This document shows positions 12,215-61,857 of a DNA stretch of 64,000 nucleotides, in pieces. Within the stretch, counting starts at the first letter, position 1. Each line of letters starts with the position of its first letter. The translations under genes and the position numbers were made by a program. The DNA lies in IMG/VR virus record IMGVR_UViG_3300035182_002586, positions 62,001 through 126,000 of that record; one strand, given 5' to 3'. The notes beneath the pieces were generated by a model. That model was not told the DNA's origin. It was given only the letters and a program-made list of their open reading frames with translations, and ran no database searches.

Positions 12215-13685
12215 CTGCCTGCATAGGTAGCAGCTCGTCGTCCTTCGTGGGGGCGAACTTCAAGGGCACCCTCGGAGACTTCTTGGACTCGTCGTGTCCG
12301 CGAGGGAAGTCTAGGGGCACCCCTCCGATGTGGTCCACCTCCGTCAGAGCCCTTTGATCCGAAGAACCAAGGGATCCAACTCCATCAAAGCGGAGAAGGG
12401 GGTCCCTCGGTGTAGCCGGGGGCGGCGGGGGAGCAGGGGCCGGGGGCGGCGGGGGAGCAGGGGCCACCTCGGCAGGAGGGGTAGCTGCTTCGACGGGGCC
12501 GTCTCCCGGGTTCTCCGGAATGTAGGCAGGGGTGGGGGTGGGGGCCGCGACCGGAGGGGTGGGGGCCGGAGCGGACACGGGGGCTGGACCCCCGTAGGAC
12601 TGCGCCACGAAGACGATGGGGGGCTGCGGCCCCATCGGGGGGAGGTTCCCTTGTGCCTGCGACAGCAGGAGGACGTCCGAAAGGAGGCCGGCTTGCGTCA
12701 GAGCACGCCCACGAAGGAAGTACTCTGAGAGGCGCAGCGCGTGTACGCCGTACCGCTTGTAGACCTCTCCCGCGAGGTTTCTGTCGACGTAGATCAGGTC
12801 TGTGTGCATGCCGTTCGCGAGTCGGTATGCGTTCATTGCTGCCTCGGAGATACCACTCACGGTCTCATCCGGCGACGATCTTTCGCACGCCTGCTCGACG
12901 AGGGCCACCGCTTTCCGAGGGTCGTGCAGAGCGAGGAGGATCTCGTAGTAGGTCGAGACAACCCCGAGGTTCAGGTACTCCCGCACCGTCTCGGCGCTGA
13001 CCCTCCCCATCTGCGAGACCATCTCCAGGCGGTTGAGCACGTCACGAACGTGCCCGCCGGAAAAGTCGATGACCATCAACACGGCTTCATCGTCGAAGTC
13101 GACCCCCTCTGCCCGGAGGACCGTCTGCATACGCGCGAGAATCTCTTCCCGCGTGACCTTGCGGATCGTGTACTCCTCACAACGGGATCGGATGGTGCCC
13201 CGGATCTTGTCGGGTTCGGTCGTGCAGAACATGCCGATCATGCGCTTGTCTTCGATCGGCTTGAGGAAGACGTCCTGCGCATCACGGGACATGCGGTGTG
13301 CTTCGTCGAAGAGATAGACCCTCTTCGGGGCTCCGAAGACCGCGAAGGGGAGTTCGTCAACGATGGCACGCGCGTGGTCGATGGTGCCGTTCGAGGCGGC
13401 GTCCTTCTCTACGAAGGCGCGACCCTCTTCACGCAACACGTCCATGCAGTTGTCACACGTGTTACACGGCTCGGGGTCCCCCTTCGGGTCGACGAGCTGC
13501 TCGCAAAGCATCGCTCGGGCGTGGATACGCGCGAGCGTGGTCTTCCCTTGGCCGTGCCCCCCGGAGAAGATGTACGACGTGTCGAGGGCAGAGCCGTTCC
13601 GTAGCCTCGCTCGGAGGATCTGGACGTTGCCCTCTTGCCCCAGCACGTCCGCGTACTTGAGCGGACGATAGCGCGTATCCCACAT
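12156..13685 (-). CDS. dnaX: DNA polymerase III gamma/tau clamp-loader subunit
   Basis: YRP...DVLGQ, GGHGQGKTT, PCNTCDNC, DAASN, DEAH, TIRSRC; Pro-rich tail. Confidence 0.92.
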   Translation of the reverse strand: MWDTRYRPLKYADVLGQEGNVQILRARLRNGSALDTSYIFSGGHGQGKTTLARIHARAMLCEQLVDPKGDPEPCNTCDNCMDVLREEGRAFVEKDAASNGTIDHARAIVDELPFAVFGAPKRVYLFDEAHRMSRDAQDVFLKPIEDKRMIGMFCTTEPDKIRGTIRSRCEEYTIRKVTREEILARMQTVLRAEGVDFDDEAVLMVIDFSGGHVRDVLNRLEMVSQMGRVSAETVREYLNLGVVSTYYEILLALHDPRKAVALVEQACERSSPDETVSGISEAAMNAYRLANGMHTDLIYVDRNLAGEVYKRYGVHALRLSEYFLRGRALTQAGLLSDVLLLSQAQGNLPPMGPQPPIVFVAQSYGGPAPVSAPAPTPPVAAPTPTPAYIPENPGDGPVEAATPPAEVAPAPPPPPAPAPPPPPATPRDPLLRFDGVGSLGSSDQRALTEVDHIGGVPLDFPRGHDESKKSPRVPLKFAPTKDDELLPMQADAWRREFERTWPGAGGGGG

Positions 13686-15061: not shown

Positions 15062-15789
15062 ATGCCTACCCTGGTCCTCCCTCCCCGCTACACCAGCGAC
15101 TCGCAGCGCCTCTGGAGGGCCGCCATCGACGCCGGGTGGGACGTTCAACGCCTCTCGACTTCCTCGTCCAGGTCTCCGAGAGGGCTCCTCGTGGGGCGCC
15201 CCGTCTTCACGCGATCCTTGGAGGAGGCGTGGGGCTCGTGGGGCCTGCCTTCGTGAAGCCGGCCGAGGAGAAGGGCTTTCAGGCGAAGGTGTACGAGAAC
15301 GGGCGGACGCTGCGGAAGGCGACGGAAGCGTTCGATCCGAACCTACTGGTCCTCGTGAGCGAGCCCGTGTCCTTCGACGTGGAGTACCGCTTCTTCGTCA
15401 TTGGAGGGTCGGACCTCATCCCCATGGGCAAGCGTGTCGTGGCCGGTTCGATCTACATCCGGAACGGGGACATCGCCGAAGTAGACGGCGAGTGGCCGTG
15501 CGATGCAGGGGAGCTGGCGGCGGCACGAGCCTTCGCGGAGTCCGCGCTCTACAGCATCGGGCCGGGGTGGACCACCTACACGCACGGGCTCAGCGGCTTG
15601 AGCGCCCCGTCGTTGCTGCCGGCCGGTCTCGTTCTCGACGTGGGGCGCTTCAACGCCGGGGCCCGCAAGGATCAGTGGGGGATCGTCGAAGCCAACCCGG
15701 CGTGGGGTGCCGGTCTGTGCGGATGTGACACAGCTCCCGTGCTGGAAGTTCTACGGCGAACGACGGTGCCAGCAGTGCCGCAGCCCTAA
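15062..15789 (+). pseudogene. Frameshifted ATP-grasp (DUF4343-like) gene
   Basis: N-term MPTLVLPPRYTSDSQRLWRAA lies in one frame; PAFVKP...SEPVSFDVEYRFFV...VLDVG...IVEANPAWGAG lies in another; frames switch around 15150-15240. Confidence 0.7.
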
Positions 15790-31298: not shown

Positions 31299-32480
31299 AT
31301 GAGCGAAACGCAGTCTGAACTGGTCGTAGTCGGCAAGGGTTCGATCACCGCTGCATCGGCGGAAGAGGAGTGGTCCGAGACGGACCTCGACACGGACGTG
31401 ACGGCAGAGGTGGGCGAGGACGACAACGACAACGACACGGCTGCGCTTGCGCTCGTGACGCCGCCCCCGGCGACGCGCCCGCGTGGTGCGTCGCTCGACA
31501 CGAACGAGGGCCGTCCGTGGCCGGCGGGCGTGCCGCGCAACTACGACGAGATGTACCAGACGTGGGGGAAGTACGTCTCGAACCTCATCGGCCGGTACAA
31601 CAAGGTCGATCGCAACTTCGAGGAGCTGGTCCAGTGGATCTGGGAGAAGCTCCTCCAGTCGAACCTCCTGGAGAAGTACGTCGACCGTCTCTACGACTCG
31701 CAGGAGACCGTCTCGAACTTCGAGGCGTGCCAGTTCGTCGGCCTCGCCTGGAGCGTCGAGCGCATCGGCCCGGACGGCAAGAAGCGCATGGATCGCGGCC
31801 CGTGGTACAAGCGCATGTGGCGCTGCTACTGCGGCGAGCCGATGGGTCGCAAGGGGAACATCCCGCTCGGCCCCGACGGTCAGCGGCTCCGGAAGAAGTC
31901 CGGCTGGATGCCGAAGATCGTCAAGGGGACGTGGGCCTCGAAGGAAGCTCTCCTCCTCCGCAGCGACGTCATCAAGTTCAAGGAACAGCTCGACGAGGAG
32001 CGCATGGAGGCGGCCCTGGAGGGCAAGGTCCTGCGCATCTGGCAGAGCATCGGGGAGTCGAAGATCCCGATCCCGGCGTCGACGGACGCGAACTTCGCGG
32101 GCTACTTGCGCCGCGCCGTCCGCAACCACTTCTGCAACTTCGTCCGCCACAAGGAGCGCAAGGAAAAGGAGCGGCTGCACGACCACTTCTTCACCTTCAC
32201 GAACCGTCTGGCGCAGAACGAGGGCGCGCAGTGGGAAGACCTGCTCGTCGACGAGCGGAGCGGCGGGGCCGCCGAGGCGTCCGCCGAGCTGAACGCGGCG
32301 CTCGCCAAGATGCTGCCGCACATCCCGGAGAAGTTCCAGAAGTCGCTCTTCGACCTCCTCATGGAGGGCGTGACCCTGGAACACTCGATCAACCGTCTGG
32401 ACGCGACGCCTGAGGAGAAGCGCACGATGTCGCGCGCCGTCTCCGCGGTGCGGCCGATCAGACGGCAGGCGGGCTACTGA
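31299..32480 (+). CDS. Phage sigma-factor-like protein with a large insertion in region 2
   Basis: YDEMYQTWGKYV...FEELVQWIWEKL [insert] FAGYLRRAVRNHFCNFVR; C-terminal L.KML..IPEKFQ....L...G.TL. Confidence 0.6.
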   Translation: MSETQSELVVVGKGSITAASAEEEWSETDLDTDVTAEVGEDDNDNDTAALALVTPPPATRPRGASLDTNEGRPWPAGVPRNYDEMYQTWGKYVSNLIGRYNKVDRNFEELVQWIWEKLLQSNLLEKYVDRLYDSQETVSNFEACQFVGLAWSVERIGPDGKKRMDRGPWYKRMWRCYCGEPMGRKGNIPLGPDGQRLRKKSGWMPKIVKGTWASKEALLLRSDVIKFKEQLDEERMEAALEGKVLRIWQSIGESKIPIPASTDANFAGYLRRAVRNHFCNFVRHKERKEKERLHDHFFTFTNRLAQNEGAQWEDLLVDERSGGAAEASAELNAALAKMLPHIPEKFQKSLFDLLMEGVTLEHSINRLDATPEEKRTMSRAVSAVRPIRRQAGY

Positions 32481-33063
32481 TCGCCGCGAGGACTTCCAGG
32501 GCGCGAGCCTCCAGCTCCGCCCTGGTCCCTTCGTTCACGATGACGTGATCGGCGACACTCACCTTCTCCATGAGCGGGAGCTGTGAAGCAATACGAGCCC
32601 GAGCAGCTTCTTCGGATAGTTCGTCACGCGCCATGATGCGCTGAATCTGCACCGCAGGGGACACGGCGACGACGACCAGGGGTCGGTAGTGCCTGTGAAG
32701 CCCCTTCTCGATCAAGAGGGCTGCATCGACACACACGATGCAGCCCTTCTTGCGTTCTGTCTCGACACGAGCCGCGATGGCCTCGAAGAGGATGGGGCCC
32801 AGGGTGGTGTCGAGACGGTTCAGCTCCGACACCGAACCGAACACGTGCGCCCCGAGCGCCTTCCGATCCAGCGTCCCGTCCGCTGTCAGGAACTTCGCCC
32901 CGAACGTCTTCACGATGACATCCAAGCCCGGCTCCCCGGGGCGCACGATGTCCCTGGATACGAGGTCCCCGTCGACCACAGAGACACCCGCAGCCGCGAA
33001 GACCGTGGACACGGTGCTCTTCCCCGACGCTATCCCACCCGTCAGCCCGAACACGATGGCCAT
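32458..33063 (-). CDS. coaE: Dephospho-CoA kinase
   Basis: GLTGGIASGKSTV, LDRKALG..VF, DAALLIE, RIASQLP...K...AD.VI.N. Confidence 0.92.
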   Translation of the reverse strand: MAIVFGLTGGIASGKSTVSTVFAAAGVSVVDGDLVSRDIVRPGEPGLDVIVKTFGAKFLTADGTLDRKALGAHVFGSVSELNRLDTTLGPILFEAIAARVETERKKGCIVCVDAALLIEKGLHRHYRPLVVVAVSPAVQIQRIMARDELSEEAARARIASQLPLMEKVSVADHVIVNEGTRAELEARALEVLAAISSPPAV

Positions 33064-34019: not shown

Positions 34020-34670
34020 GTGCGCGTGCCGGACGACGACGTGTACATCGTGACCGGCTACCTGCACGCCAAGCGTCGCATCATCGAGGCCGGGTTCGCC
34101 AACGACATCGATTGGGCGGAGGGTCTCGCCAAAGTAGTCCCGGACGCCCACTACGTCATGCGCGAGACCGCGTGGGTCATCATCAACAGCGGTTTCCGAG
34201 CCAAGGTGGCGCAGAAGCTCTGGCCGCGCCTCCGGTTCGCCTTCAACGAGTTCGTCCCGCAACTCATCGACGAGACGAACTTCAAGGCTGCGATGGCGAT
34301 CCTCGCGCATGAGGGCAAGATGAAGGCGATCGTGAAGGTCGCCGAGATCATCACCCGAGACGGGATCGGCCAGATCTTGGAGGATGCCAAGGACCCTCCG
34401 AGGCTCACGCGGTTGCCGTTCATCGGTAAGATCACGTGCTACCACCTGGCGAAGGTGCTTGGGGTCGATGTCGTCAAGCCCGACGTGCACCTGACACGCG
34501 CGGCGGTGGCGGCGAAGAAGCCGTCCCCCCTCGCTCTGTGTGAAGCGATCCGGAATGCGATCGGGGACACGCTCACGGTCGTCGACTCTGTACTGTGGCG
34601 CTACGGGGAGCAGCAAGAAGCACGCAAGTGGCCGACGTGGGACATGTTGTTCGAGGTGTCGACGGTGTAG
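34020..34670 (+). CDS. HhH DNA-glycosylase-like protein
   Basis: LTRLPFIGKIT..HLAK.LG.DVVKPDVHL. Confidence 0.65.
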   Translation: MRVPDDDVYIVTGYLHAKRRIIEAGFANDIDWAEGLAKVVPDAHYVMRETAWVIINSGFRAKVAQKLWPRLRFAFNEFVPQLIDETNFKAAMAILAHEGKMKAIVKVAEIITRDGIGQILEDAKDPPRLTRLPFIGKITCYHLAKVLGVDVVKPDVHLTRAAVAAKKPSPLALCEAIRNAIGDTLTVVDSVLWRYGEQQEARKWPTWDMLFEVSTV

Positions 34671-35573: not shown

Positions 35574-36230
35574 ATGGCTTTCCCCGTTTTCCCCGAAGGT
35601 CCCCGAGTCCTCAGCCCCACGGGCCTGGTGGTCTACCCGGAAGACCCTAGCACCGGCTACCCCGCCAACGCGTCGAACGCCGTCCCCGGTCAGGTGTTGT
35701 GCGTCCGTGGGCCCGAGTCCTACCCGGTCACGTCGAGTGACCCCCTCTACGGTCGTCGGGGCTACCTCGACATGCAGGTGTACCTCGGGATCCCCCCGAC
35801 GAGCCCGTCCGTGTACCGCCCCATCGGCCGGCGTCGTCGTCCCCGTCCGTGGCCCCCCGCACCGCACTCCCCTCCGCAGTCCCTCTTCGCGATCGTGGGG
35901 GCGGACGGTGCCTACTTCGCGGTGTCCATCGACCCCACGGGCAACAACATCCAGTTCGGGATGTCCGATGGTCAGGCTGTAACCGTCGCACAGACGAACG
36001 CCGCGTCCTTCGGCGACAACATGGTCGTGCGGCTGGTCGTATCCTTCGACGCAGTTCGGGGCGTTGCCTCCGCGTCCTTCGACGGTACCCCGGCAACGTG
36101 GACAGTCGAACCGAGCGGGCCGTGGTTGCCGTTTCGGCCTACCCGCATCGACATCGGCACCGAGACGCCAGAGCTGGGCTTGGACGGCTTCGACGGTGCG
36201 CTCTACCTGGCGCAGTACGGCGAGCCCTAG
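35574..36230 (+). CDS. Hypothetical beta-sandwich protein, possibly virion-associated
   Basis: ORF; TTATC motif upstream. Confidence 0.55.
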   Translation: MAFPVFPEGPRVLSPTGLVVYPEDPSTGYPANASNAVPGQVLCVRGPESYPVTSSDPLYGRRGYLDMQVYLGIPPTSPSVYRPIGRRRRPRPWPPAPHSPPQSLFAIVGADGAYFAVSIDPTGNNIQFGMSDGQAVTVAQTNAASFGDNMVVRLVVSFDAVRGVASASFDGTPATWTVEPSGPWLPFRPTRIDIGTETPELGLDGFDGALYLAQYGEP

Positions 36231-38797
36231 AGCACGTCGTCGTCATCGAGAAGGCGCGTCCACAGCTCACGCCCCGGGGCGTCCTGGATGGTACGCGCCT
36301 TCTGCGTAGAGCCTCGCGTGAGCCCACGGAAGTCTCGTAGTAGGTCGGCGATGGGCACCGTCTCTTCAACGCCCCCCGTCCACCGAACACGGGCAGTGCG
36401 CCGCACTTCGTCGAACTCGACGACGTTGCATCGACGGTGGGTCTTGGTGTTGACCCACTCGTCCCCGAAAGGCGGCGGGGTGTCTTCCGTGGTGGTCAAT
36501 GTACCGCCGACGAGGAAGGCCGACGTCAACGCGTCGTAGCGCACGGGCTGCTCTCGCGTGAAGTCGTCGAGAGGGCCGACCCAAGCGATGCGCGCGTCCT
36601 CCCCGAGCCTTCGGATCGACAGAAGTGTCCCACGGGAGGAGATGATCTGGCCTGCACGGAAGCTCGTGGTGCTGGTGATGGGGGTCGCCATCTGCGCGTG
36701 CACGAGCCCGTCCGCAACGACGACAGCAGCGCACAGGAGAACCGTAGACCCGTCCTTCGTCGGCACCGGGACCTCGAACACCTCGCCGACGTTCACCGTC
36801 TCTTCGTCCGGGAGCAGAAGATGCAGCGTGGAGGTGTTGGCGTGCATCACCGACGCCGGGTGGAGACGCCGAACTTCCGTGGAGGGTTGTGCGGCGGGTC
36901 GGGGTCGAGAAGGGGTCGCTTGGCTCGTCAGGTCGGGGACTCCGAGTGCCGATCGAATGGCCCGTGCGGTGTGCTCGGTCTCCCCCGACAGGTCGAGGAG
37001 ATCTGCGGTCCCCCACGTTGCATCGTCGAGGATGGTCGCGAACTCCGTACGGCCGCGAATGCGACGGGGTGCGGTCGGGAACCCAAGCGTCGTCGGGGGT
37101 TCCTGGTGAATCGGGGTGGCAGTCACGTAGTCCCGGCCGTCGTTTTGGCTTACGTCCTCTGCCGAGAGGAACATGAGTAGCCCGTTCGCCACGGACTCCA
37201 CAGCGACCCTCGGGATCATGTCGAGAACCTGCCCCGCTCGCAGGTCTGGGGAGTAGGCCGACGTGCTGTTCCGGTAGACCAACTCAGACGTGTTCGACCA
37301 GAAGTCGTTGAGCGGGAGCCTCTCCACGTTACCAGACGGCAGGATCTCCACATCCACGTGGTGGGAGGCATGGTCGAGGACTCGAAGCAGTGCCGCCGGT
37401 CCTCGCAACCATAACCACAGCGACCCGACGTTGAGCGAAGGGGCTACGGGCTCCTCGGGGGATACGCGATCCCTCAAGGACAGGAGCACCAACTCCGCCG
37501 GGTAGGGTCCTTGGAACGGAGCAGCAGTCAACGTCATGGGGTGGAGATCCGACACATCCATGCTGGATACGAGGCGGATCTCGTGTGGCGAAGGCATGCT
37601 CTCCACGAAGCACATACGGCCGTCTGCGAGCCGAAGGTGGGAACCGACCCGGAAGTTCCCGAGCAACCCTCCTAGGGGGTTGACCGAGATCTCGTGCTCC
37701 GCTTGTCGACCGTGCGCGGCGAGCTGTTGCGCGGGGATGTAGGCCAGGTGGTTGCTCCCCGGGAAGACCACCCGAAGACGGGCCCCAAGGTCGTCGAACA
37801 CTCGAACGAGAGTCGGTCCGACCGTGGACTGGAGCACCCACAGGGTCCCTTCCAACGAGGACCTAGACAGAGGGCGTGGCATCTCCTCCGGACGCGTGAC
37901 GGGGTTACTACCCGGCCTCAGCGGGACCCACTCTCTCACGAGGTCGTCCATCCACACGCGTGGCGACGAGCCGTTCAAGACCACGTACGGTCTGCGGTAG
38001 GAACCCGACACATCCTGGATGCGTGCAACCTCAAGCGTGGTGAGGTTGTGCACCAGAACCCCGGGCGATGCCCATGCGGGGGTGTCCACGGAATCCGTGC
38101 AAAGCTGGCGGCGACCACCGAAGGAAGAGATCCTCTCGACGGAACGCACGCGGTTGTAGTTCGCGGCGAAGTCCTGGAACGGGATGACGACGAGAGGCGT
38201 GCCGGCAGGCTGCCCCTCATCACGCACGTGAATCTCCGTCGTGATCCCTCGGACTTCCACCACCCTCTGGACCGTGACCGTGGCGCCGGGTTCGACCCAC
38301 TGTGCCCACGACTCCCCCACGGCGGGGGTGGGGAACGGGACGAACCCCAAGAGGTCCCGGAACCTGATCTGCTCGTTCGCCGCTTCGTGCGGGCGAGCGG
38401 GATCGATGTACGTGACGTGAAGGGTGCTCGCGCGCAGATCCACGCGATCGATGATGTGCGTGACCCCCCTGCACACGAGGTGCAGGTCCGGCTCGATCCA
38501 GAAGGGCGGGATGTCCTCGTCTTCTCTGGCCTCCCACGCTTCTTCTTCCTCGTCGCGGTACGTGACCCGTGCACGGAACGGGGGCGTCATCGGTGCCACC
38601 CGTTGAATCCAACGGTGGGGGCGCCACATGGTCACGGTATCCCCGAGCGATGGACGGTATAGAACCGCAGGGTCGTTGAGGTGGCGGATGAGAACGTGCG
38701 GGGACACGTCCCGCGTGATCTCCTCGACGATGCCCTGCGCATCGTTCGCGACGGTCTGGACCACAGACCCGGGGGTGAGCCAACGAGGGGACGGCAT
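36227..38797 (-). CDS. Large hypothetical protein with repeated small beta-barrel-like modules
   Basis: Start MPSPRWLTPG at 38797; recurring W..PG / G[ESD].W modules. Confidence 0.65.
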   Translation of the reverse strand: MPSPRWLTPGSVVQTVANDAQGIVEEITRDVSPHVLIRHLNDPAVLYRPSLGDTVTMWRPHRWIQRVAPMTPPFRARVTYRDEEEEAWEAREDEDIPPFWIEPDLHLVCRGVTHIIDRVDLRASTLHVTYIDPARPHEAANEQIRFRDLLGFVPFPTPAVGESWAQWVEPGATVTVQRVVEVRGITTEIHVRDEGQPAGTPLVVIPFQDFAANYNRVRSVERISSFGGRRQLCTDSVDTPAWASPGVLVHNLTTLEVARIQDVSGSYRRPYVVLNGSSPRVWMDDLVREWVPLRPGSNPVTRPEEMPRPLSRSSLEGTLWVLQSTVGPTLVRVFDDLGARLRVVFPGSNHLAYIPAQQLAAHGRQAEHEISVNPLGGLLGNFRVGSHLRLADGRMCFVESMPSPHEIRLVSSMDVSDLHPMTLTAAPFQGPYPAELVLLSLRDRVSPEEPVAPSLNVGSLWLWLRGPAALLRVLDHASHHVDVEILPSGNVERLPLNDFWSNTSELVYRNSTSAYSPDLRAGQVLDMIPRVAVESVANGLLMFLSAEDVSQNDGRDYVTATPIHQEPPTTLGFPTAPRRIRGRTEFATILDDATWGTADLLDLSGETEHTARAIRSALGVPDLTSQATPSRPRPAAQPSTEVRRLHPASVMHANTSTLHLLLPDEETVNVGEVFEVPVPTKDGSTVLLCAAVVVADGLVHAQMATPITSTTSFRAGQIISSRGTLLSIRRLGEDARIAWVGPLDDFTREQPVRYDALTSAFLVGGTLTTTEDTPPPFGDEWVNTKTHRRCNVVEFDEVRRTARVRWTGGVEETVPIADLLRDFRGLTRGSTQKARTIQDAPGRELWTRLLDDDDVL

Positions 38798-38799
38798 GG

Positions 38800-40305
38800 T
38801 CAGAGGTCCTCGTCGCCAATGAGGCGGTCGTAGACGCTGGCTCGCACGAAGGGCTTCCACTCGACAGCGAAGGCAGACAGGGGGACTACCTGCGACCCCG
38901 TGCGTACTCCGTCCTTGTCGAGGGTGATGATGTTGCGGCGGCTGTCGATCTGTATGACCTTCGCGACCTGACCCGTTCGAGTCTCTTCCCACTCCTCTCC
39001 GCAAGCGACCTTGATCGGCAACGGGGGGTCAGGGGTCTCGGCAGGCTTGGCGTTCAGCGTCGCGTCGTACTTGTCGAGGAACTCGCGGAAGGTGACGACG
39101 ATCTCCGATCCCGTCGTGGTGATCAGGTGGACTTGATCCCCTTCGGTACGGGCGACCGTGGCTTCTTGCGTCCCGGCCTTCTCTTTCCACGGGGCTCCGG
39201 GAGCGAGAAGGGTGCTCACCATCCTCGGGAGGTTGGCCCGGAGCTGTGCCCTGGTCCGTCCAGCGGCCGAGATCATGGGCTCCACCGTAGTCAGGAAGAG
39301 GCGGATGGACTCAATGGAGAGACCGCTGGTGCGGGCAGCCTCTACCAGCACGGGGTCCTCACGCTCGACGGGAGGCGGAGCTGGAGTCGGGGTCGGAAGA
39401 GTCTCCGCCAAGGACGAGAAGAACGTGCGGAACCACTCCGGTATCCCGGCTGCCTGGTTCCGATGACGCTCGAACTCGCGGCGGTCTGCCTCGGTGATCG
39501 TCACCGCTTCCGTAGTGGGGCGATCTGGACGCCCACCCAACCGGGAGACGGGCATCGGCGGTCTCGGCCTGGAAGGACGTTCGTTCTCCCGTAGAACGAT
39601 GTGGACGGCCGTGGGCTCGATCGAAAGCGACAGCCTCGGTGGCAGGGAGAGGGTGCGGTCTAGCAAGTCCGTCGATCGACTGTCCCCCAAGGCCGCAGGA
39701 CCCATCTCGACGCGATCCACCGTGAGACTGCTACTGTGGATGTGTCTCAGAGCGCTCTGAACGACCGTCTCGTACCAACGCCCCCTCGACGCGATGTCGA
39801 TTAGGTCCGCAGCGGGGGACGGGATGGCCGCCCACACGCGGCCACAGAGCTGACACGACCACCAGGACCACGCAGCGCCCGCAGGACGAACCGAGAGGAG
39901 ATCCTCTGCCGTCGCCGTGCTTGCGCACGACGGGCAGGTCATCGACGGCTGATCTCGCGCAGGGGTACGAGGATCGACGCTCGGCGAGTGCGTGAGCAGC
40001 TCGGCTTGGATGGAGATGGGTAGGTGTCTCGGGCAGACGTACTCGGTCGTACCATCCCGCTCGTACTTGAAGAACGCGCTGATGGGACAGCCTCGTCGGC
40101 CGCAGGTCATGTGTGTGCGCGGTGCAGGGGCTACGAACGTCCAGTTCAGCTCCAGCATGCGTGGAGCCACGCGGAAACGATGACCCGTGGACGAGACGAG
40201 CGTGATGATGGTGTCCGTCGCGTCTGCGACCACACCTCGCACTTCGAGGCCCTGCGCATCGCGCATCGCCCAACTCTCACCGATCTGTGGATTTCCGACG
40301 GGCAT
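38800..40305 (-). CDS. Hypothetical protein with Zn-finger motifs and similar modules
   Basis: CxxxxC...CxxH, CxxC...CxxC; IGESW, GEEW modules. Confidence 0.7.
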   Translation of the reverse strand: MPVGNPQIGESWAMRDAQGLEVRGVVADATDTIITLVSSTGHRFRVAPRMLELNWTFVAPAPRTHMTCGRRGCPISAFFKYERDGTTEYVCPRHLPISIQAELLTHSPSVDPRTPARDQPSMTCPSCASTATAEDLLSVRPAGAAWSWWSCQLCGRVWAAIPSPAADLIDIASRGRWYETVVQSALRHIHSSSLTVDRVEMGPAALGDSRSTDLLDRTLSLPPRLSLSIEPTAVHIVLRENERPSRPRPPMPVSRLGGRPDRPTTEAVTITEADRREFERHRNQAAGIPEWFRTFFSSLAETLPTPTPAPPPVEREDPVLVEAARTSGLSIESIRLFLTTVEPMISAAGRTRAQLRANLPRMVSTLLAPGAPWKEKAGTQEATVARTEGDQVHLITTTGSEIVVTFREFLDKYDATLNAKPAETPDPPLPIKVACGEEWEETRTGQVAKVIQIDSRRNIITLDKDGVRTGSQVVPLSAFAVEWKPFVRASVYDRLIGDEDL

Positions 40306-40378
40306 TCTTCCTCGCGAGGTCCGTGCAGGAACCTCCTATCGCGCCGTTCCTAGTGCTACACCGCCGCCGGGAGAACGT

Positions 40379-40822
40379 GTGTCGTCCATCGACCCAGCCA
40401 AGGCTTTTCAGGCGTTTGCCGACCTCGGCGTTTACCCGAACGACGTGCGAGCACTGGAACGCCTGCCCTTTCCTGAGGCTCAGGTGGCTCTACTTGAGCT
40501 GAAAGAAAGGGCCCGGAGGAACTTCCGGCGTCTATCCCTGGAGCTACACCCTGACCGCAACGGCGGGAACGAGGCGCTGACAGAGCGTTTCAAGGTGATG
40601 TCTGCGGTCCGCGACGAGCTGGAGAAGATCGAGGTGCACCCCGCCCCGGCACCCCCGCGTCCGGTCCCTGCGCACCCTCGTGCTGTGAACCCCTTCCCTC
40701 AGCACAGGCACCCCTTCCCCTTTGGCGGGGGTGTCACGGTGATCAACTTCGCGTCGAGCACTTCGGCGACGGGGGCGGTAGGCGGGTGGGTAAGCCGGCC
40801 GATCCGCATCATCATCCGGTGA
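40379..40822 (+). CDS. J-domain (DnaJ-like) protein
   Basis: FRRLSLELHPDRNGG....F. Confidence 0.75.
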   Translation: MSSIDPAKAFQAFADLGVYPNDVRALERLPFPEAQVALLELKERARRNFRRLSLELHPDRNGGNEALTERFKVMSAVRDELEKIEVHPAPAPPRPVPAHPRAVNPFPQHRHPFPFGGGVTVINFASSTSATGAVGGWVSRPIRIIIR

Positions 40823-40864
40823 AAAAGACCACGGCCGGTGTAGATTAACCCATGGGAGCTGACC

Positions 40865-41191
40865 ATGGCAGAAGATGACCCCAAGAAGCCGCCCGTCTGT
40901 CCCGGTGAGGACCAGCTCGTGATTGGGGGTGCTCCCGACGAGAGCGGGCACGTCCCCTACGTCCGTCACACGGCCGATCACGAGATCGAGGCTGGTGTCA
41001 TGCGCCCGGTGCAGGAAGGGGAAGCGATCGACGAGAACTCGTTCCGTCTGGAACACCGCTCCGGCCCCATCTACGCCGTCAAGCCCGTCTCCGAAGGGGA
41101 TCGCAAGGGCCCCGCGAAGGTCGCGAGCGACGCCTTCCGCTCCGGGTGGGACAACATCTTCGGCAAGCGTCAGCCCGTAGGCCAAGCCTGA
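40865..41191 (+). CDS. Hypothetical protein
   Basis: GGAG RBS; ORF. Confidence 0.65.
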   Translation: MAEDDPKKPPVCPGEDQLVIGGAPDESGHVPYVRHTADHEIEAGVMRPVQEGEAIDENSFRLEHRSGPIYAVKPVSEGDRKGPAKVASDAFRSGWDNIFGKRQPVGQA

Positions 41192-41192
41192 T

Positions 41193-41423
41193 ATGCCCGT
41201 CTTCCAACCGAAGCGCACGAACGGAAGCCGGTTCGATGCCTGGACGGCTCCCTGCCCCGTCTGCTCGAAGAAAGCAGACGAAGACTGCATCCACGTGCTC
41301 GTGCGTGACACGCAGGAAGACACGTTGAAGCCTCGGGTCCCCGTCGCTTCTGGGGGTGTACCCGCGCCCGATGTACCGAAAGGAATCTGGGAACGCATCC
41401 TCGATGACGAAGACGTGGTGTAG
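41193..41423 (+). CDS. Small zinc-finger protein
   Basis: CPVC......C; C-terminal WERILDD. Confidence 0.6.
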   Translation: MPVFQPKRTNGSRFDAWTAPCPVCSKKADEDCIHVLVRDTQEDTLKPRVPVASGGVPAPDVPKGIWERILDDEDVV

Positions 41424-41431
41424 ATCGAGAC

Positions 41432-42304
41432 ATGCCCTCTGACCGCACGACGGCGATGGTCCGCAACTTCGGTATCCTCTACGGGATGAGCAAGACGGGC
41501 GCTCTCCCTCCGAACTACGAGAAGCTCGACATCGCGGAGATGCAGCACGTCTGGAACCACGGCCGGGAGCGAGACCCTCGTGTGGGTCAGGTACTCGACG
41601 CACTATCGAGCACCCGGGCACCCCTCGGCCCCTACGCCGCCATCCAGGCGGGGATCCCGTGTCCGGTCTGCCCGTCCGGTGCCTGCGTGCACGGTGCAGG
41701 CACCCCTCTGGAGCCGCCGCTTGTCAGAGTCGGCGGGACCACTAGGTCCGACGTACCGGAGTTCCAACGGAACTACCTGAGCTACGCCCCCGTGACCGTA
41801 CCCGAGATGCCGCCCCCGCCCCCATCGCCCGCCCCTGTGGTGACGCCGGAGCTGCTGCGGAAGGCGCTCGAACGGTTCGATAAGGTCTACAAAGACCAGT
41901 GGCAGCGCATCCTGGAAGATGACGGGAACGACGACGCGATCTTCGTTGAGATCGAGAGAATCATCGGGGCCGCACGCAAGAAGCTGATCCACCCCAACGC
42001 TTGGTGGCGCGGCCGCGAGCCTGCCGTGGGTCCGGATGGCCCGGTTGGAGGTAGCGACCCCCGGGCCGTGAAGTGGTCGATCTCCGGGGCGTTGTACGCA
42101 GAGATGTCGGATGACCCTCAGGTTTCCGCCGCTGTGCGCGCCGCTGTGACCCTCGTTGCGACGGTTGTGTCCGGGACCCTCCAGACGGACTGGTTCGCTG
42201 CGGACATGAGGCTGACGCGGTGGAACGCAGACCCGAAGAGGCTCTACACGGACGTACTCCACGTCCTGGCTCAGGTGCACCTGGCCGTGAAGCAGCGGGC
42301 TTGA
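41432..42304 (+). CDS. Hypothetical protein
   Basis: GGTGTA 9 nt upstream; ORF. Confidence 0.6.
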   Translation: MPSDRTTAMVRNFGILYGMSKTGALPPNYEKLDIAEMQHVWNHGRERDPRVGQVLDALSSTRAPLGPYAAIQAGIPCPVCPSGACVHGAGTPLEPPLVRVGGTTRSDVPEFQRNYLSYAPVTVPEMPPPPPSPAPVVTPELLRKALERFDKVYKDQWQRILEDDGNDDAIFVEIERIIGAARKKLIHPNAWWRGREPAVGPDGPVGGSDPRAVKWSISGALYAEMSDDPQVSAAVRAAVTLVATVVSGTLQTDWFAADMRLTRWNADPKRLYTDVLHVLAQVHLAVKQRA

Positions 42305-42594: not shown

Positions 42595-43209
42595 ATGCTC
42601 TCGTCCCTGACGTTCGCGAAGGATTTCCGCTGCTTCAAGGCGTCGGAGAGGATCGACTTCCACGCAGGGGTCAACCTGCTCGTAGGGGACCAGGGGGCCG
42701 GGAAGTCGAGCCTGTTGTCCATCCTCCGTGGGTTCGGTGGCGACGCCATGGCTCTCGGGCCGATGTCGGTGGCGGAAGCTCGGCAGACGGTGAAGGTCGC
42801 GGCCACGGGGGAGCGCTTCAAGTCCTTCGGGTTCGACTTCGAGAAAGAGAACCCCCGCACTCTGCCAGGCATCGCCGAGAAGGGGGCCGGCGGGATGTTC
42901 TTCCAGGTCGGGAGCTTCTTCCGGTCCCACGGGGAGACCGTGAAGTCGATCATCGCCTCCCTCGAACAAGAGGCGGTCAAGGGACCCTACCTCATCCTGT
43001 TCGACGAGCCTGACGCCGGACTGTCCCCGCGCAGCGCGGTGGAGCTGCTTCGAGTCCTACGGGTCGTCACGGAGCACGGGGGGCAGGTCATCGCCTCGGT
43101 CCACAGCCCCATCCTGATGCTCGGGGTTCCCGAGGTGCTTTCCCTGGAGCACCGCCGGTGGATGCCGGGACGGGAATTCCTCGCAACGCACGGCGTCAGC
43201 GGGTTCTAG
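42595..43209 (+). CDS. Stand-alone ABC/AAA ATPase
   Basis: GDQGAGKSS, SHGE, LFDEPDAGLS, SVHSP. Confidence 0.85.
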   Translation: MLSSLTFAKDFRCFKASERIDFHAGVNLLVGDQGAGKSSLLSILRGFGGDAMALGPMSVAEARQTVKVAATGERFKSFGFDFEKENPRTLPGIAEKGAGGMFFQVGSFFRSHGETVKSIIASLEQEAVKGPYLILFDEPDAGLSPRSAVELLRVLRVVTEHGGQVIASVHSPILMLGVPEVLSLEHRRWMPGREFLATHGVSGF

Positions 43210-43507: not shown

Positions 43508-43764
43508 GCCGCTGCGACTGGTGTGACACCCGAACGACGGGCTGCACGGGCCTCTGCCGAACCTGTAAGTCCAAGCGCTTCCACGCAGTGAGGCGCATCA
43601 AGGAGGAGAAGCTCCTCGTCGACACTGCCGGAGGATCCTGGTGGGTGTGGGACGCGAAGGGCACCGTTCTCGTGATCGGCAAGACCTCCAAGTACATGGC
43701 CCTCAAGGCACTCGCCTTGGGTGACGGAGATCAGGATCAGGAAGGGAGCGAGGCACGGACATGA
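43504..43764 (+). CDS. Small Cys-rich hypothetical protein
   Basis: GTG start overlapping the upstream stop; CxxC...CxxC. Confidence 0.55.
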   Translation: MSRCDWCDTRTTGCTGLCRTCKSKRFHAVRRIKEEKLLVDTAGGSWWVWDAKGTVLVIGKTSKYMALKALALGDGDQDQEGSEART

Positions 43765-44105
43765 GCGAGAAGAAGACCAAGGAACCCGGCGAAGACATCC
43801 AGAACCGTGGCGTCAGCACGTGGCGCTACAAGCGGGAACCCGAGGAGCTGCGCTTCGCCAAGGCATGGGATCACCAGTGCACTGTGGGCCGAACCCTCGA
43901 CCACCTGCTCGATCAGCGGGAGGTCCGGACCGGGCACCCGCCGTACGCCAACGACCGCGACGTCACCGTTGCCGCCACTGTCATCCAGTGGCTCGGTTCG
44001 AACGTCGGTCAGAGCTTCCTCGCCGACCTCGGGTACGTCCGGCCCGGCTCCTGCGAGTGGGAAGAGATCCTCCTCCAGCGTGGCTACGTGAAGAAGGATT
44101 GGTAG
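43761..44105 (+). CDS. Hypothetical phage protein
   Basis: E..FA..W...VAATVIQWLGSNVG.SFL. Confidence 0.65.
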   Translation: MSEKKTKEPGEDIQNRGVSTWRYKREPEELRFAKAWDHQCTVGRTLDHLLDQREVRTGHPPYANDRDVTVAATVIQWLGSNVGQSFLADLGYVRPGSCEWEEILLQRGYVKKDW

Positions 44106-44183: not shown

Positions 44184-44388
44184 TGCCATCGGCTCGTTGT
44201 GGTGTATAGGAAGGGGGACACTACACGTGGACCGCGCTCCCTCGGGGGTTTGGGTCCTCGTGACGGCTGGCCGCACCTTCGGGTTTGGGTTGGCCGCGGA
44301 CGATCGCTAAGGCGCCGTGGGTTTGGAAGCCAGTCCGGGCTTCGCACCAGCGGTAGGACCGACCCGAAACGTTTCACGGAGGACCCCC

Positions 44389-46107
44389 ATGAAGGTCGAA
44401 GCACGTCTCACGTATGGACAGATCCGTCACGACCAGCCCAAGGACGCCCACCTCGTCCTCTCCCTGACCGCGCCCCCGCTCGCCGAAGAGACCAAGCGCC
44501 CGCCGATCTGCGTGGTCGCAGCCATCGACGTGTCGCCCTCGATGGAGGGCCCGAAGCTCGCCTACGCGAAGCAGTCGGCCATCAAGATGGTCGACCACCT
44601 CCAGCCCGGGGACTACTTCGGGCTCGTGGACTTCGCGCAGAGCGCGAGGCTCGTGATCAAGCCGCAGAAGGTGACGACCGCGTACAAGGACGAAGCGAAG
44701 CGGCAGATCGGCGGGCTCAAGGTCCGGGGCGCCACGAACATCGCGGACGCTCTTCTCGTCTCCCTCGACGCGGCGAACCGAATGGACCTCGGGGCCGAGG
44801 TCATCACCCGCTGCATCCTCTTCACCGACGGGGACGCCAACACCGGGGTCGCCATCACGCCGAAGGCCATCATCGAGCTGCTCTCGAAGAACCTCGGGAT
44901 CGCGACCGTCAGCGCCTTCGGGTACGGCGAAGACGTGAAACAGGAGCTTCTCGCGGACATCGCGAAGGTGGGCAAGGCGAACTACGCCTTCGTCAAGAAC
45001 CCGGACGACGCCCTCAGCGCCTTCGGTAAGGAACTCGGCGGACTGGTCTCCACGTGGGCGACGGGCATCACGGTCGAACTCGCGCCCTCGGCGGACGAGC
45101 ACAGCTTCCGGGCCATCGTCTCCGACGTGGAGGCCGAGGAGGACGTGGCCGGGCACATGACGATCAAGATCCCGGACCTCCTGGCGGAGGAGACGCGGCA
45201 CATCGTCCTCGGGGTGAACCTCGCCCCGCAGAAGGCCGTGGGCCCGCGTGCCGTCAACGTCTTCGAGGCGAAGATCGCCTACGACGTGATCGGAACGGAC
45301 GGGCGCAAGGAGCGCAAGACCATCGAAGCCAAGGCGAAGGTCCAGTTCGTCAAGGCGGGGGACGAGCAGAAGACCCCCACGAAGACGGTCGACGAGATCG
45401 TCGCGCAGGCGCAGATCGTCCGTGCACAGATCGAGGCCGAGCAGGCGGCACAGCAGGGCGACTTCAAGACGGCCGGGGCGGTCTTCCAGAAGACGTCCAA
45501 GAGCCTCCAGGACCGCGGGCACGCGGACCTCGGGAGCGTCGTCAGTCACCTCCACGGGATGTACGCCGACTCGAACTCGTACCGCACCACGTCCGGCAAC
45601 CGCGTCGGCATGCGCACCGCGATGACTCGCGCCGTGGGGGCGTCCGGGCTCGACAGGGACGACGAGGCCCTGCTCAGCTCGGCGCGCTACAACATGTCGA
45701 ACTCGTCGCAGACCTCGATGGTCTCCAGCTTCACCGGGGACACGCCCCCGCCTCCGGCAATCCACGGCGGGACCGCCCTGGCTCCCGTGGCGACCCTCAT
45801 CGCCGCTCCCTCGTGGGTCGGGGGTGTGGCTCCTGCGCAGCCCTCCGCCGGGTGGGTCCAGCCTGCGGGCGGGGTCAGCATCCAGGACCTCCAGAACGCG
45901 ATGGGCGTCGTTCCGTTCAACGGGATGCCGCCGCACCGTCCCGGGTACACGGTCCCCCGCTCCGCCGACGCGCAGCAGCTCCAGGAAGCCGCAGCCGAGG
46001 CGCTGCGGAGGATCGACGCCGACAAGAAAGCCAAGGAAGAGAAGCCGGCCCCGTCGTCGAAGGGTCGCAAGCCCCTCAAGCAGACGAAGAGCCCGACTCG
46101 CTGGTAA
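44389..46107 (+). CDS. von Willebrand factor A domain protein
   Basis: MIDAS DVSPSM, GATNI, LFTDGDAN, FGYG; GGAGG RBS. Confidence 0.88.
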   Translation: MKVEARLTYGQIRHDQPKDAHLVLSLTAPPLAEETKRPPICVVAAIDVSPSMEGPKLAYAKQSAIKMVDHLQPGDYFGLVDFAQSARLVIKPQKVTTAYKDEAKRQIGGLKVRGATNIADALLVSLDAANRMDLGAEVITRCILFTDGDANTGVAITPKAIIELLSKNLGIATVSAFGYGEDVKQELLADIAKVGKANYAFVKNPDDALSAFGKELGGLVSTWATGITVELAPSADEHSFRAIVSDVEAEEDVAGHMTIKIPDLLAEETRHIVLGVNLAPQKAVGPRAVNVFEAKIAYDVIGTDGRKERKTIEAKAKVQFVKAGDEQKTPTKTVDEIVAQAQIVRAQIEAEQAAQQGDFKTAGAVFQKTSKSLQDRGHADLGSVVSHLHGMYADSNSYRTTSGNRVGMRTAMTRAVGASGLDRDDEALLSSARYNMSNSSQTSMVSSFTGDTPPPPAIHGGTALAPVATLIAAPSWVGGVAPAQPSAGWVQPAGGVSIQDLQNAMGVVPFNGMPPHRPGYTVPRSADAQQLQEAAAEALRRIDADKKAKEEKPAPSSKGRKPLKQTKSPTRW

Positions 46108-50660: not shown

Positions 50661-51530
50661 ATGTCGAACGCAACCAGCTACAAGGTGGCCGAGTCACTGT
50701 ACCTCGTCCGCCAGGAAGTCGCGAAGGGGAACCAGGTCGCGAAGCCGGTCGAGATCCCGACCAACCACATCCTGGAGATCGACTGCTCAGGGAGCATGTC
50801 ATGGGATCTCCCCAAGATCCGCGAGCAGGTCAAGAAGAAGCTGGTGAAGCTGCTCAAGGAGGGGGACACCCTCTCCATCGTCTGGTTCAGCGGGCGTGGA
50901 CAGTGCGGGGTTCTCCTGGAAGGTGAGCCGGTCGCGACGCTGGCGGACCTCAACAACGTGAACGCTGCGGTCGATCGCTGGCTCAAGCCGGTCGGCATGA
51001 CGGGCTTCAAGGAGCCGCTGGAGCTGCTCCCGGGCCTGATCGAGCGTCTCGCGAAGAAGTACCCCAAGAACGTCAACTCGCTGATGTTCCTCTCGGACGG
51101 CTGCGACAACCAGTGGTCGCGCCCCGACGTGCTCAAGGCGATGGAGAAGGCGGCCGGCGGGCTCTCAGCCACCACGGTCGTCGAGTACGGCTACTACGCG
51201 GATCGTCCACTGCTCACGGCGATGGCCGAGCGCGCGGGTGGGAGCCTCATCCACGCGGCGGGGTTCGACAAGTTCGAGCCCATCCTCGAAGCCTCGCTCA
51301 AGAAACAGGTCGTCGGCGGCAAGCGCGTCGAGATCGACGTGAAGGGTGACGTCATCGGCGGCTTCGTCTGGATGGAGGACAACGGCGACCTCGTGACCTA
51401 CGGGATCGCGGACGGCAAGGCGCACGTCGCCGAGCAGACGCAGGCGGTGTGGTACCTCTCGCCGACTCCTATGGGGAAGGTGGAGGGGAACCTGAGCCAG
51501 TTGGCGGAACAGGCGTCGAAGGCGGCTTGA
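50661..51530 (+). CDS. vWA-domain protein, N-terminal part of a probable split gene
   Basis: IDCSGSM, GMTGF, FLSDGCDN; AAGGAGG RBS. Confidence 0.85.
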   Translation: MSNATSYKVAESLYLVRQEVAKGNQVAKPVEIPTNHILEIDCSGSMSWDLPKIREQVKKKLVKLLKEGDTLSIVWFSGRGQCGVLLEGEPVATLADLNNVNAAVDRWLKPVGMTGFKEPLELLPGLIERLAKKYPKNVNSLMFLSDGCDNQWSRPDVLKAMEKAAGGLSATTVVEYGYYADRPLLTAMAERAGGSLIHAAGFDKFEPILEASLKKQVVGGKRVEIDVKGDVIGGFVWMEDNGDLVTYGIADGKAHVAEQTQAVWYLSPTPMGKVEGNLSQLAEQASKAA

Positions 51531-60740: not shown

Positions 60741-61229
60741 ATGGGCAATCACGGGCTCGTCGCCGTCTACGCTGGCACGTTCGACCCCCCGACCATCGGG
60801 CACGAGGACCTCATCAAGCGGGCGCTCGGCTTCTGCGAGAAGCTGATCATCGGCATCGGGGTCAACTCGACCAAGACGCCGATCTTCACCGTCGAAGAGC
60901 GCGTCGAGATGCTCCAGAAGCTCGCGGACAACCCCCGGGTCGAGGTCGTGGCCTTCCAGGGGCTCCTCGTCGACTTCGTGCGCAAGAGCGGCGGGAGCAT
61001 GATCATCCGCGGCTTGCGTGCCGTGATGGACTTCGAGTACGAGATGGGCATCGCGCACGCGAACGCCGACCAGGCGCCGACGGTCGAGACCGTCTTCCTC
61101 GCGACCAAGCCGCAGTACTCGTTCATCTCCTCGTCTGTCGTCCGTGAGGTCGCCAAGTACGGCGGCTCCGTGCGACACTACGTCTCCCCGCTCGTCGAAG
61201 AGGCCCTCAGGGCCAAGTTCAGGAAGTAG
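60741..61229 (+). CDS. coaD: Phosphopantetheine adenylyltransferase
   Basis: YAGTFDPPTIGH, IIRGLR...DFEYE, ISSSVVRE. Confidence 0.95.
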   Translation: MGNHGLVAVYAGTFDPPTIGHEDLIKRALGFCEKLIIGIGVNSTKTPIFTVEERVEMLQKLADNPRVEVVAFQGLLVDFVRKSGGSMIIRGLRAVMDFEYEMGIAHANADQAPTVETVFLATKPQYSFISSSVVREVAKYGGSVRHYVSPLVEEALRAKFRK

Positions 61230-61253: not shown

Positions 61254-61327
61254 GCTCCCGTGGCCGAGTGGTTCAGGCGGGCGACTTTAAATCGCCGTCA
61301 ACGTGGGTTCGAGTCCCACCGGGGGCG
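61254..61327 (+). tRNA. Ochre suppressor tRNA, anticodon TTA at 61287-61289
   Basis: Full cloverleaf: GCTCCCG/CGGGGGC, GCC-GAGTGGTTCA-GGC, GGCGA-CTTTAAA-TCGCC, GTGGG-TTCGAGT-CCCAC; discriminator G; no encoded CCA. Confidence 0.85.
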
Positions 61328-61857
61328 CTCCTCTTCAAGTGGTTGCGGACAGATGATTCGGCTACCCCAAGCTGTCTGACTACTTCACTCTTTGAGGTCT
61401 TTGCAATCAAGTCCAGAAGCTCCTCCATCGGAGGCCATGCGGCACGCTTAGCTCTAGGCTTTCGGTGCCCACACGAACGACACTGCACACTGGACTTGGC
61501 GATCGTAGTCCCGCACCGACAGGTCTTGTGTGTGGCCTTCGCGATGCTCCGCCCACAGAACGTTGCGGTCTGTGAGTCGCAGTTAGGACACAGAAACCTC
61601 AAGTTTTCTAGTCTGTGATCACGATTCACACCGTTGATATGGTCCAGCCGAAGCACGAGAGGTTTTCCTCCCCACTCGGGCCCAAGCTGACAGCCAACAC
61701 AGTGGGATGTGTCCAGGGCCAGGCGCGCGATAGCGTTGCGCACGTAGGCTGCCCCTCCACCAGAAGCAGAGGGTCGACCTAGAGCACGAAGAATTGCAGT
61801 GACACTAGCGTGCTCTCGCACAAGCACCACCAGGGTGTCGTCAGAGATGGGTTACAT
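61273..61857 (-). CDS. HNH endonuclease overlapping the tRNA antisense; upstream ATG at 61857 followed by in-frame TAA (alternative GTG start 61830)
   Basis: LRLDHINGVNRDHRLENLRFLCPNCDSQT; C-terminal HTH. Confidence 0.75.

Follow-up and report, generated by a model that had tools for sequence, protein, structure and literature searches.

About two dozen otherwise unrelated proteins of a 529-kb uncultured phage (hereafter G000), and proteins of its distant relatives, end in the same 10‒12-residue helix-plus-acidic peptide, which most likely serves as a docking or address tail for one common partner, a role inferred from sequence and predicted structure alone. The peptide was first noticed in a 64,000-nucleotide stretch of G000 (hereafter the window), where a sequence-only reading described four instances in one gene cluster, at the C-termini of three proteins and inside a fourth. 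This observation is correct, and all four instances are present, but the motif is not confined to the cluster, since tails occur at about 20 further places in the genome. The motif consists of a hydrophobic residue, W/Y/F, D/E, R/H, L/I, L/M, any residue, and then two to four acidic residues, often followed by a final L/V/F, and it closes at least 19‒24 unrelated proteins across the genome.

Distribution of the C-terminal motif

The cluster in the window comprises the following genes.

36227..38764 (−): an ORFan protein of 845‒856 aa (ORF 36227‒39004) with repeated small beta-barrel-like segments; its last 13 residues (nt 36227‒36268, stop included) are the tail.
38800..40305 (−): a 501-aa protein with three predicted Tudor/KOW-like barrels, a Cys-rich zinc-ribbon region and a helical domain; its last 12 residues (nt 38800‒38838, stop included) are the tail.
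40400..40822 (+): a J-domain protein of about 140 aa with an HPD motif and without the tail, transcribed divergently from the 501-aa gene; the start codon is uncertain, and the ORF opens at 40187.
40865..41191 (+): a conserved 108-aa protein without the acidic tail, ending in a related but basic G-W-D/E-x-I/T-F-G-K stretch.
41193..41423 (+): a 76-aa protein with an N-terminal Cys pair, a Pro-rich linker and the tail as its last 13 residues (nt 41382‒41423, stop included).
41432..42304 (+): a 290-aa protein with the internal motif at residues about 155‒167 (nt 41894‒41932), directly N-terminal of a DUF6197 domain (residues 176‒281; Pfam E = 7e-7).

Chance is excluded. In the coding-like ORFs of the whole genome, a strict pattern gave 22 matches, whereas ten shuffles gave 1‒4, reversed sequences gave 3, and 494,000 residues of other-frame ORFs gave 4. 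Sixteen of the 22 matches end within 4 residues of the stop (binomial P = 3e-19). A position matrix with a score of at least 16 gave 14 hits against 0‒1 in shuffles. All-against-all BLASTP among 18 carriers aligned only the 10‒30 tail residues, with the sole exception of the two DUF6197 proteins, the second of which is a DUF6197-like protein at genome positions 456598‒457056 with the motif at its N-terminus. The motif is not a DNA repeat: the conserved Arg and Leu use 4‒5 different codons, and pairwise identity is 0.70 at codon positions 1+2 against 0.39 at position 3, indicating conservation at the protein level. The motif also sits in the linker between the two lobes of an SNF2 helicase and is kept in a subset of its homologues.

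Most carriers are ORFans, which precludes a cross-check of their function. Pfam gave nothing for most carriers, and PHROGs gave nothing for 20 carriers and neighbours; the 845‒856-aa protein, whose database copy (P0123) is 845 aa, and the 108-aa protein had no hit in either. We found no DNA or protein similarity to GenBank phages. Single-protein scans of IMG/VR found nothing, 79 helicase-based IMG/VR loci lacked the motif, and a DNA pattern for the motif returned mostly unrelated internal matches in IMG/VR. A feature search of the Atlas with the tail alone found nothing usable. Literature searches by peptide strings and by topic found no description of the motif.

Conservation and predicted structure

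All four orthologues in the syntenic contig L122 keep the motif at about 50% overall identity, including the 845-aa orthologue of the large ORFan, the 72-aa orthologue of the 76-aa protein and the DUF6197 protein. The large ORFan also has orthologues in contigs L119 and L121. For the 501-aa protein, a word-index search found only 2 relatives, and none of the 856-aa protein, while an exhaustive search gave a family of 124 representatives, of which about 103 end in the motif, down to about 20% identity. Their logo is R-R-T/S-A/L/V-Y/F/W-D/E-R/H-L-L/M-acidic, and the aromatic residue sits 7‒12 residues from the end. A second genome, G001 (252 kb, 27% identity in the 501-aa family protein), has at least 10 C-terminal and 4 internal or N-terminal copies, and only one of these, on the 501-aa family protein, lies on an orthologue of a G000 tail carrier. 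Changes are correlated within a genome: in L119, the helicase, the 711-aa and the 457-aa proteins all keep the aromatic-x-R/H/L-L core but all lack the acidic run.

The J-domain gene, correctly recognized in the sequence-only reading, scored 28.4 bits against the Pfam DnaJ (PF00226) cut-off of 27.8 (E = 1.7e-6), and its HPD tripeptide is invariant in four orthologues. It is a conserved, divergently adjacent neighbour of the 501-aa family in seven contigs, and is adjacent to it in L119, L091, L122, L126, L127 and G001. The 108-aa protein has an orthologue in G001 at 46% identity.

The AlphaFold2 model of the 501-aa protein has a mean pLDDT of 85 and a tail helix at residues 491‒500. The pLDDT of the tail is only about 74, and the tail was predicted to be helical in two independent models, which do not show what it touches. 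Fold searches with the two models gave only middling matches to Tudor, KOW, CarD and UvrD C-terminal domains, on the first barrel. One co-folding job with the tail of the 76-aa protein against the 501-aa body, the DUF6197 domain and the 108-aa protein, which did not include the J-protein, DnaK or the AAA+ protein, gave a median score of 0.16 against a mark of 0.32, a score that counts neither for nor against binding.

Inferred docking function and candidate partners

The sequence-only reading proposed a short linear docking motif, comparable in principle to an SSB tail, through which several phage proteins bind one hub such as a chaperone, RNAP or a membrane protein, and this interpretation is partly supported. 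The genome is a virus record, and the peptide behaves as a short linear motif: it is shorter than 15 residues, recurs on non-homologous proteins, and is retained in orthologues while the flanks diverge. Lack of enrichment at C-termini or of conservation in orthologues had been named beforehand as grounds for rejection, and neither was found. A single hub, and its identity, remain hypothetical. The comparison with the SSB tip (D-D-D-I-P-F) holds only for the acidic run plus terminal hydrophobic residue of a subset of tails and of the helicase linkers (D-D-P-F type). The best conserved part, the upstream aromatic-x-R/H-L helix, has no counterpart in SSB tips, many tails end in an acidic residue and only a minority end in P-F, the tail sits on many client-like proteins rather than on one hub, and Pfam detected no SSB in the genome.

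We consider, with moderate confidence, that the tail is a portable short linear docking or address peptide. Our analysis establishes that an 11‒12-residue module (S/T, hydrophobic, W/Y/F, D/E, R/H, L/I, L/M, x, acidic run, often a last hydrophobic residue) closes many unrelated, mostly fast-evolving non-structural proteins in a clade of uncultured huge phages, that it is kept under protein-level selection, and that it is modelled as a short helix. Binding itself is inferred. In this view, the hydrophobic face (position −1, the aromatic, and the two aliphatic residues at +3/+4) would insert into a groove of one common partner, and the near-invariant Arg/His and the acidic run would contact the rim of that groove, so that many variable proteins are tethered to, or routed by, the same machine. 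A shared tail could instead be a tag for turnover or modification rather than a stable docking site. No partner gene was found, and Hsp70, SSB, beta clamp, gp45 and PCNA, as well as family B and Pol III alpha DNA polymerases, were absent from the genome by Pfam. A DNA-borne platform, such as a sliding clamp loaded by the phage's clamp-loader-like ATPase, ranks first only tentatively, closely followed by a chaperone or AAA+ machine, and a capsid, scaffold or compartment is less likely still; the remaining likelihood falls to another host target.

The first candidate is a ring clamp, either the host beta clamp or an undetected phage clamp, to which the peptide would tether helicase, transcription-type and accessory proteins, as T4 gp43, gp55 and gp33 use C-terminal tails to bind gp45. 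The phage encodes a clamp-loader-type AAA+ protein (DNA_pol3_delta2, E = 7e-21), which is 56% identical in G001. The T4 tails (AF158101) end in S-L-D-F-L-F/Y within acidic context, resembling S/T-L-aromatic-D here, and the placement at C-termini, at N-termini or in linkers is typical of clamp-binding motifs. Carriers include the SNF2 helicase, and possible further carriers in relatives are a MarR-like protein and a ligase. However, no clamp family (PF00712, PF02768, PF02916, PF00705) was detected in the genome, and two clamp-sized unknown proteins of the replication block gave nothing against PDB sequences or the Atlas. The only DNA polymerase found, of family A, lacks the motif, and so does the FEN protein. 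In the bacterial beta-clamp-binding motif (Q-L-S/D-L-F), positions 3‒5 match an S/T-L-aromatic triplet, and two G000 tails contain L-S-L-W, but the position of Q1, four residues before the aromatic, is mostly Arg or Pro in the 501-aa family, G000 tails show no Gln preference, and the position of L4 is Ala in the largest share of the 501-aa family (28 of 107). The tail continues for 7‒8 conserved residues beyond the aromatic, its conserved Arg/His and long acidic run are absent from T4 tails and have no counterpart in known clamp motifs, and carriers are far more numerous here (about 20‒25) than in T4. This reading is possible but tentative.

An equally tentative reading is a recognition tag for a protein-remodelling machine, either host DnaK, brought by the adjacent J-domain protein, or a Cdc48-like AAA+ ATPase of the phage, for assembly, disassembly or timed removal of the carriers. 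Comparable cases are Pup with Mpa, ESCRT-III MIM1 with the Vps4 MIT domain, and SspB with ClpX. Besides the J-domain gene, which in the absence of a phage Hsp70 must use host DnaK, the phage encodes a classic-clade AAA+ protein nearest to Cdc48/p97 (E about 1e-29) and a GroEL-like chaperonin. In Pup and MIM1, an acidic amphipathic helix at or near a C-terminus is read by the N-domain of an AAA+ ATPase. By sequence appearance alone, the L-x-x-R-L core resembles MIM1, and R-L-L(-L)-D resembles the NRLLLTG model peptide and the Hsp70 interdomain linker. On the other hand, there is no G-G-Q/E ligation end, and no MIT or coiled-coil domain was shown in the phage ATPase. Acidic residues are disfavoured in DnaK-binding peptides, so that direct recognition of the tail as a DnaK substrate is unlikely given its acidic flanks, and an internal copy in a helicase linker is odd for a degron.

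A sorting signal that routes variable cargo into the procapsid for injection, or into another phage-built compartment, seems somewhat more doubtful. Carriers are numerous, mostly small and poorly conserved between G000 and G001 while the tail itself is conserved, which is the pattern of variable cargo with a constant address, and they occur in clusters (genome 8‒15.5 kb, 98‒104 kb and 455‒457 kb). One short address peptide on unrelated cargo is also found in the T4 capsid-targeting sequence on polymorphic internal proteins and in encapsulin cargo-loading peptides, which are C-terminal as here. However, the sequences are unrelated, and the T4 signal is N-terminal and cleaved. No tail-bearing gene lies between 205 and 300 kb, a region of very large genes that we take, without annotation, to be the structural module. 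There is no evidence of packaging or of a compartment, no conserved protease site lies next to the tail, and the helicase copy is internal.

It is unlikely that the tail is a substrate of the phage R2K ATP-grasp peptide ligase, by which the acidic C-terminus would be extended or ligated, as RimK does to ribosomal protein S6 and TTL-type enzymes do to tubulin. R2K_2/R2K_3 ATP-grasp genes lie in the window (15136‒15789) and within 1‒3 kb of the module in L119 and L126, and the R2K.2/R2K.3 families are predicted protein-modifying ligases whose targets are unknown (PMC4431377). However, the last residue is variable (L, V, F, E, D, K, S), internal and N-terminal copies have no free carboxylate, and the R2K gene of G000 is 21 kb from the cluster. 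A similarity without a common partner, whether a cis-acting structural cap, a compositional effect of a GC-rich genome or a DNA-level element at gene ends, is very unlikely and largely refuted by the shuffled, reversed and other-frame controls and by the variable synonymous sites; the occurrence of the motif after unrelated folds and in relatives with GC contents of 0.40 to 0.66 also speaks against it, although the tail pLDDT is moderate and the tail directly follows a barrel in the 501-aa model.

Implications for huge phages

Shared docking peptides are how clamps, SSB and eukaryotic hubs organise many clients, and only a few such cases are known in phages. Here, a single peptide marks about two dozen mostly uncharacterised proteins per genome in a widespread, uncultured clade of very large phages. 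A more far-reaching possibility, which we consider unlikely but not excluded, is that the tail is a genuine sorting or recruitment code of this clade, a C-terminal 'zip code' that delivers about 3‒4% of the proteome, mainly fast-evolving accessory proteins, to a single phage-built destination or machine, such as a capsid interior for injection, a replication compartment, or an AAA+/chaperone hub serviced by the conserved J-protein. This would be the first proteome-wide C-terminal address signal described for tailed phages. If the docking reading is correct, the tail gives a handle on dark-matter genes, because a protein bearing it would belong to the same pathway, and makes the partner directly fishable with one synthetic peptide. 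Whichever partner it proves to be, whether a clamp, a chaperone or unfoldase, the capsid or a host target, the result would assign a cellular context to hundreds of ORFan families and would also explain the conserved module of J-protein plus Tudor/zinc-ribbon protein.

Genomic setting of the tail-bearing cluster

The window (bases 62001-126000) lies in a single 528,957-bp contig with 63.9% GC (hereafter G000), which is classed as an IMG/VR virus record, flagged 'provirus', with a CheckV completeness of 100. Identical proteins also occur on a 620-kb contig. G000 has no DNA or protein similarity to GenBank phages and is therefore an uncultured huge phage. The genes recognizable in or near the window encode a clamp-loader-type AAA+ protein, a 5'-3' exonuclease, a sigma-region-4 protein, and a Toprim-like protein. 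Elsewhere in the genome, we found a family A DNA polymerase, a DnaB-like helicase, a primase zinc ribbon, two SNF2 helicases, RecA, NAD-ligase, RecD2 and Mre11/Rad50-like proteins, a Cdc48-like AAA+ protein, and a GroEL-like chaperonin. The gene calls were made by a crude GC3-based procedure, and the start codons are uncertain. Features in the window and elsewhere in G000 are listed below, with reference to a 252-kb IMG/VR relative (G001, 59.5% GC) and to the related contigs L122 (12.9 kb), L119, L126, and L091.

Window 10193-12214 (-): a 673-aa protein with a 5'-3' exonuclease (FEN) domain at its C-terminal end, whose N-terminal 180 residues resemble NusG (NGN plus KOW; best PDB sequence hit E = 2e-4). 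This unusual fusion is conserved in G001 at 43% identity; for comparison, chimalliviruses have an RNase H fused to a clamp-derived domain (bioRxiv 10.64898/2026.10.01.755736).
Window 12156-13685 (-): the clamp-loader-type AAA+ gene (DNA_pol3_delta2, E = 7e-21).
Window 15136-15789 (+): an R2K-clade ATP-grasp gene (R2K_2, E = 6.5e-20).
Window 32458-33063 (-) and 60741-61229 (+): coenzyme A pathway genes in a phage. One is a dephospho-CoA kinase-like ORF, whose orthologue in L122 is marked PF01121 CoaE; the other, judged by eye only, is a phosphopantetheine adenylyltransferase-like ORF.
Window 34020-34670 (+) and 43761-44105 (+): two ORFs ending in weak variants of the motif (W-D-M-L-F... and W-E-E-I-L-L...) without the acidic run, which were not counted as tails.
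Window 40400-40822 (+): the J-protein. In G000 and L122, its C-terminus is a hydrophobic strand-like stretch ending in basic residues, after a Pro-rich linker, while L119 and L091 end differently. It has no recognizable client-binding domain.
Window 40865-41191 (+): the conserved 108-aa neighbor, which ends in G-W-D/E-x-I/T-F-G-K followed by basic or neutral residues. This stretch looks like a non-acidic cousin of the tail core and is conserved in L122, L091, and G001.
Window 42595-43209 (+) and 44317-46107 (+): an ABC/AAA_21-type ATPase and a 596-aa von Willebrand A protein, just downstream of the cluster. A weaker vWA-like gene is at 50661-51530.
Window 61254-61328 (+): a suppressor-type tRNA called by ARAGORN, with anticodon TTA, which reads UAA. 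TAA is the rarest stop among our gene calls (20, against 263 TGA and 147 TAG), and no sign of recoding was noticed.
G000 24-40 kb (locus L149): a block of recombination and repair genes, namely RecD2-like helicase, NAD-dependent ligase with BRCT, Mre11-like and Rad50-like proteins, RecA, and a PD-(D/E)XK nuclease. The block is collinear with G001.
G000 397562-400807 (-) (locus L147:1562-4807): a 1081-aa ORF with an ATP-cone and an intein splicing domain, probably an intein-containing ribonucleotide reductase, 87% identical to G001 over 575 residues.
G000 405846-407558 (-) and 315125-316873 (-): a phage-encoded GroEL-like chaperonin (Cpn60, E = 1.5e-69) and a classic-clade AAA+ protein nearest to Cdc48/p97/NSF, both conserved in G001.

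Enrichment and conservation of the C-terminal motif

The sequence-only reading described four instances of a shared acidic motif in the window cluster, and this observation held, since all four strings are present where it placed them. A six-frame search of the whole genome showed that they are a small part of a larger set. With a strict pattern, 22 matches were found in coding-like ORFs, while ten shuffles gave 1-4, reversed sequences gave 3, and the much larger set of other-frame ORFs gave 4. Sixteen of the 22 matches end within four residues of the stop codon (P = 3e-19). Looser scans, including one with a position matrix that was trained on 11 of its own hits, although terminal position was not part of the training, add further tails. 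The total is about 19-24 C-terminal copies, plus internal or N-terminal copies in four proteins, and these counts depend on the pattern used. The aromatic residue lies 7-11 residues from the last residue, most often 9. The residue two before it is Ser or Thr in 13 of 19, and the last residue is usually L, F, I, or V. The carriers range from 71 to about 930 residues and share nothing but the tail. The conserved residues are written with several synonymous codons, and third positions are far less alike than first and second positions. Selection therefore acts on the peptide, not on a DNA element.

The contig L122 is syntenic with the cluster and encodes orthologues of all four window carriers, all of which keep the motif at about 50% overall identity. 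An exhaustive profile-free search with the 501-aa protein returned 124 cluster representatives, down to about 20% identity, and about 103-107 of them end in the motif. The logo is R-R, T/S, A/L/V, Y/F/W, D/E, R/H, L, L/M, then three to four acidic residues. A short subfamily (220-240 aa) consists of just the N-terminal domain plus a linker plus the tail. Since one member lies on a contig of 40% GC, the motif spans phages of very different composition.

The whole G001 genome has at least 10 C-terminal and 4 internal or N-terminal copies. Of about 100 orthologous gene pairs between G000 and G001, only the 501-aa protein is a shared tail carrier. The tail is therefore constant while its carriers turn over. 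The SNF2 helicase of G000 carries the motif in the linker between its two lobes, and a subset of its homologues keeps it there. In contig L119, three proteins (the helicase and the 711-aa and 457-aa proteins) all keep the aromatic-x-R/H/L-L core but all lack the acidic run. A correlated change of this kind is what a shared partner would predict.

Predicted structure and gene neighborhood

AlphaFold2 with a 67-row alignment models the 501-aa protein confidently (mean pLDDT 85). The model has three small Tudor/KOW-like barrels, a Cys-rich ribbon region, and a helical domain, and the tail is a helix at residues 491-500 with pLDDT about 74. A short family member gives pLDDT 89 and again a terminal helix at about 74. 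Fold searches gave only middling matches of the first barrel to TraI, PcrA/UvrD C-terminal Tudor, CarD, and NusG KOW domains, at Z of 6-7.5. Several of those domains bind RNA polymerase, but at these scores this is a lead only.

The order 108-aa protein, J-protein, then divergently the 501-aa protein and a large barrel-repeat protein recurs in G000, G001, L122, L119, L126, L127 (a further related contig), and L091. The J-protein has a bona fide J-domain with HPD. Since a Pfam search of the genome found no Hsp70, the J-protein must act on host DnaK. R2K ATP-grasp genes lie in the window and close to the module in two relatives, next to the J-protein module in L119 and L126. That family is predicted to ligate peptides onto unknown protein targets (PMC4431377).

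Interpretation as a putative docking or address peptide

The data satisfy every sequence-level criterion of a short linear motif. The two conditions set beforehand as able to refute the docking idea, a lack of enrichment at C-termini and a lack of conservation in orthologues, both came out in its favor. The proposal of the sequence-only reading that the motif docks several phage proteins onto one hub is supported in part, at the level of sequence. The recurrence of the peptide, its terminal position, and its conservation are established by the analysis, whereas binding itself and the existence of a single partner are inferred. We consider, with moderate confidence, that the tail is a docking or address peptide for one common partner. 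In the proposed binding mode, an amphipathic helix would insert into a hydrophobic groove, with the Arg/His and the acidic run on the rim, as inferred from the residue pattern and the predicted helix. A single co-folding run of the tail of the 76-aa protein against the 501-aa body, the DUF6197 domain, and the 108-aa protein gave no result that counts either for or against binding.

Among the candidate partners, which can be ranked only tentatively, a clamp-like DNA platform has the best precedent in the T4 gp43 and gp55 tails, whose sequences we read for comparison, and is also supported by the clamp-loader gene. However, this candidate is weakened because no beta, PCNA, or gp45 clamp family is detectable anywhere in the genome, the polymerase lacks the tail, and the defining Gln of beta-clamp motifs is missing. 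The clamp would be either very divergent or the host's. A chaperone or AAA+ reader ranks next and is supported by the conserved J-protein neighbor and the Cdc48-like ATPase. A packaging or compartment signal, ranked third, fits the pattern of variable cargo with a constant address. A substrate tail for an ATP-grasp enzyme fits least, because the end residue varies and internal copies exist.

Literature searches by peptide strings and by topic, including a comparative review of jumbo phages, found no description of this motif. While shared docking peptides as such are known, this motif, its breadth within a genome, and its clade-wide conservation appear to be new.
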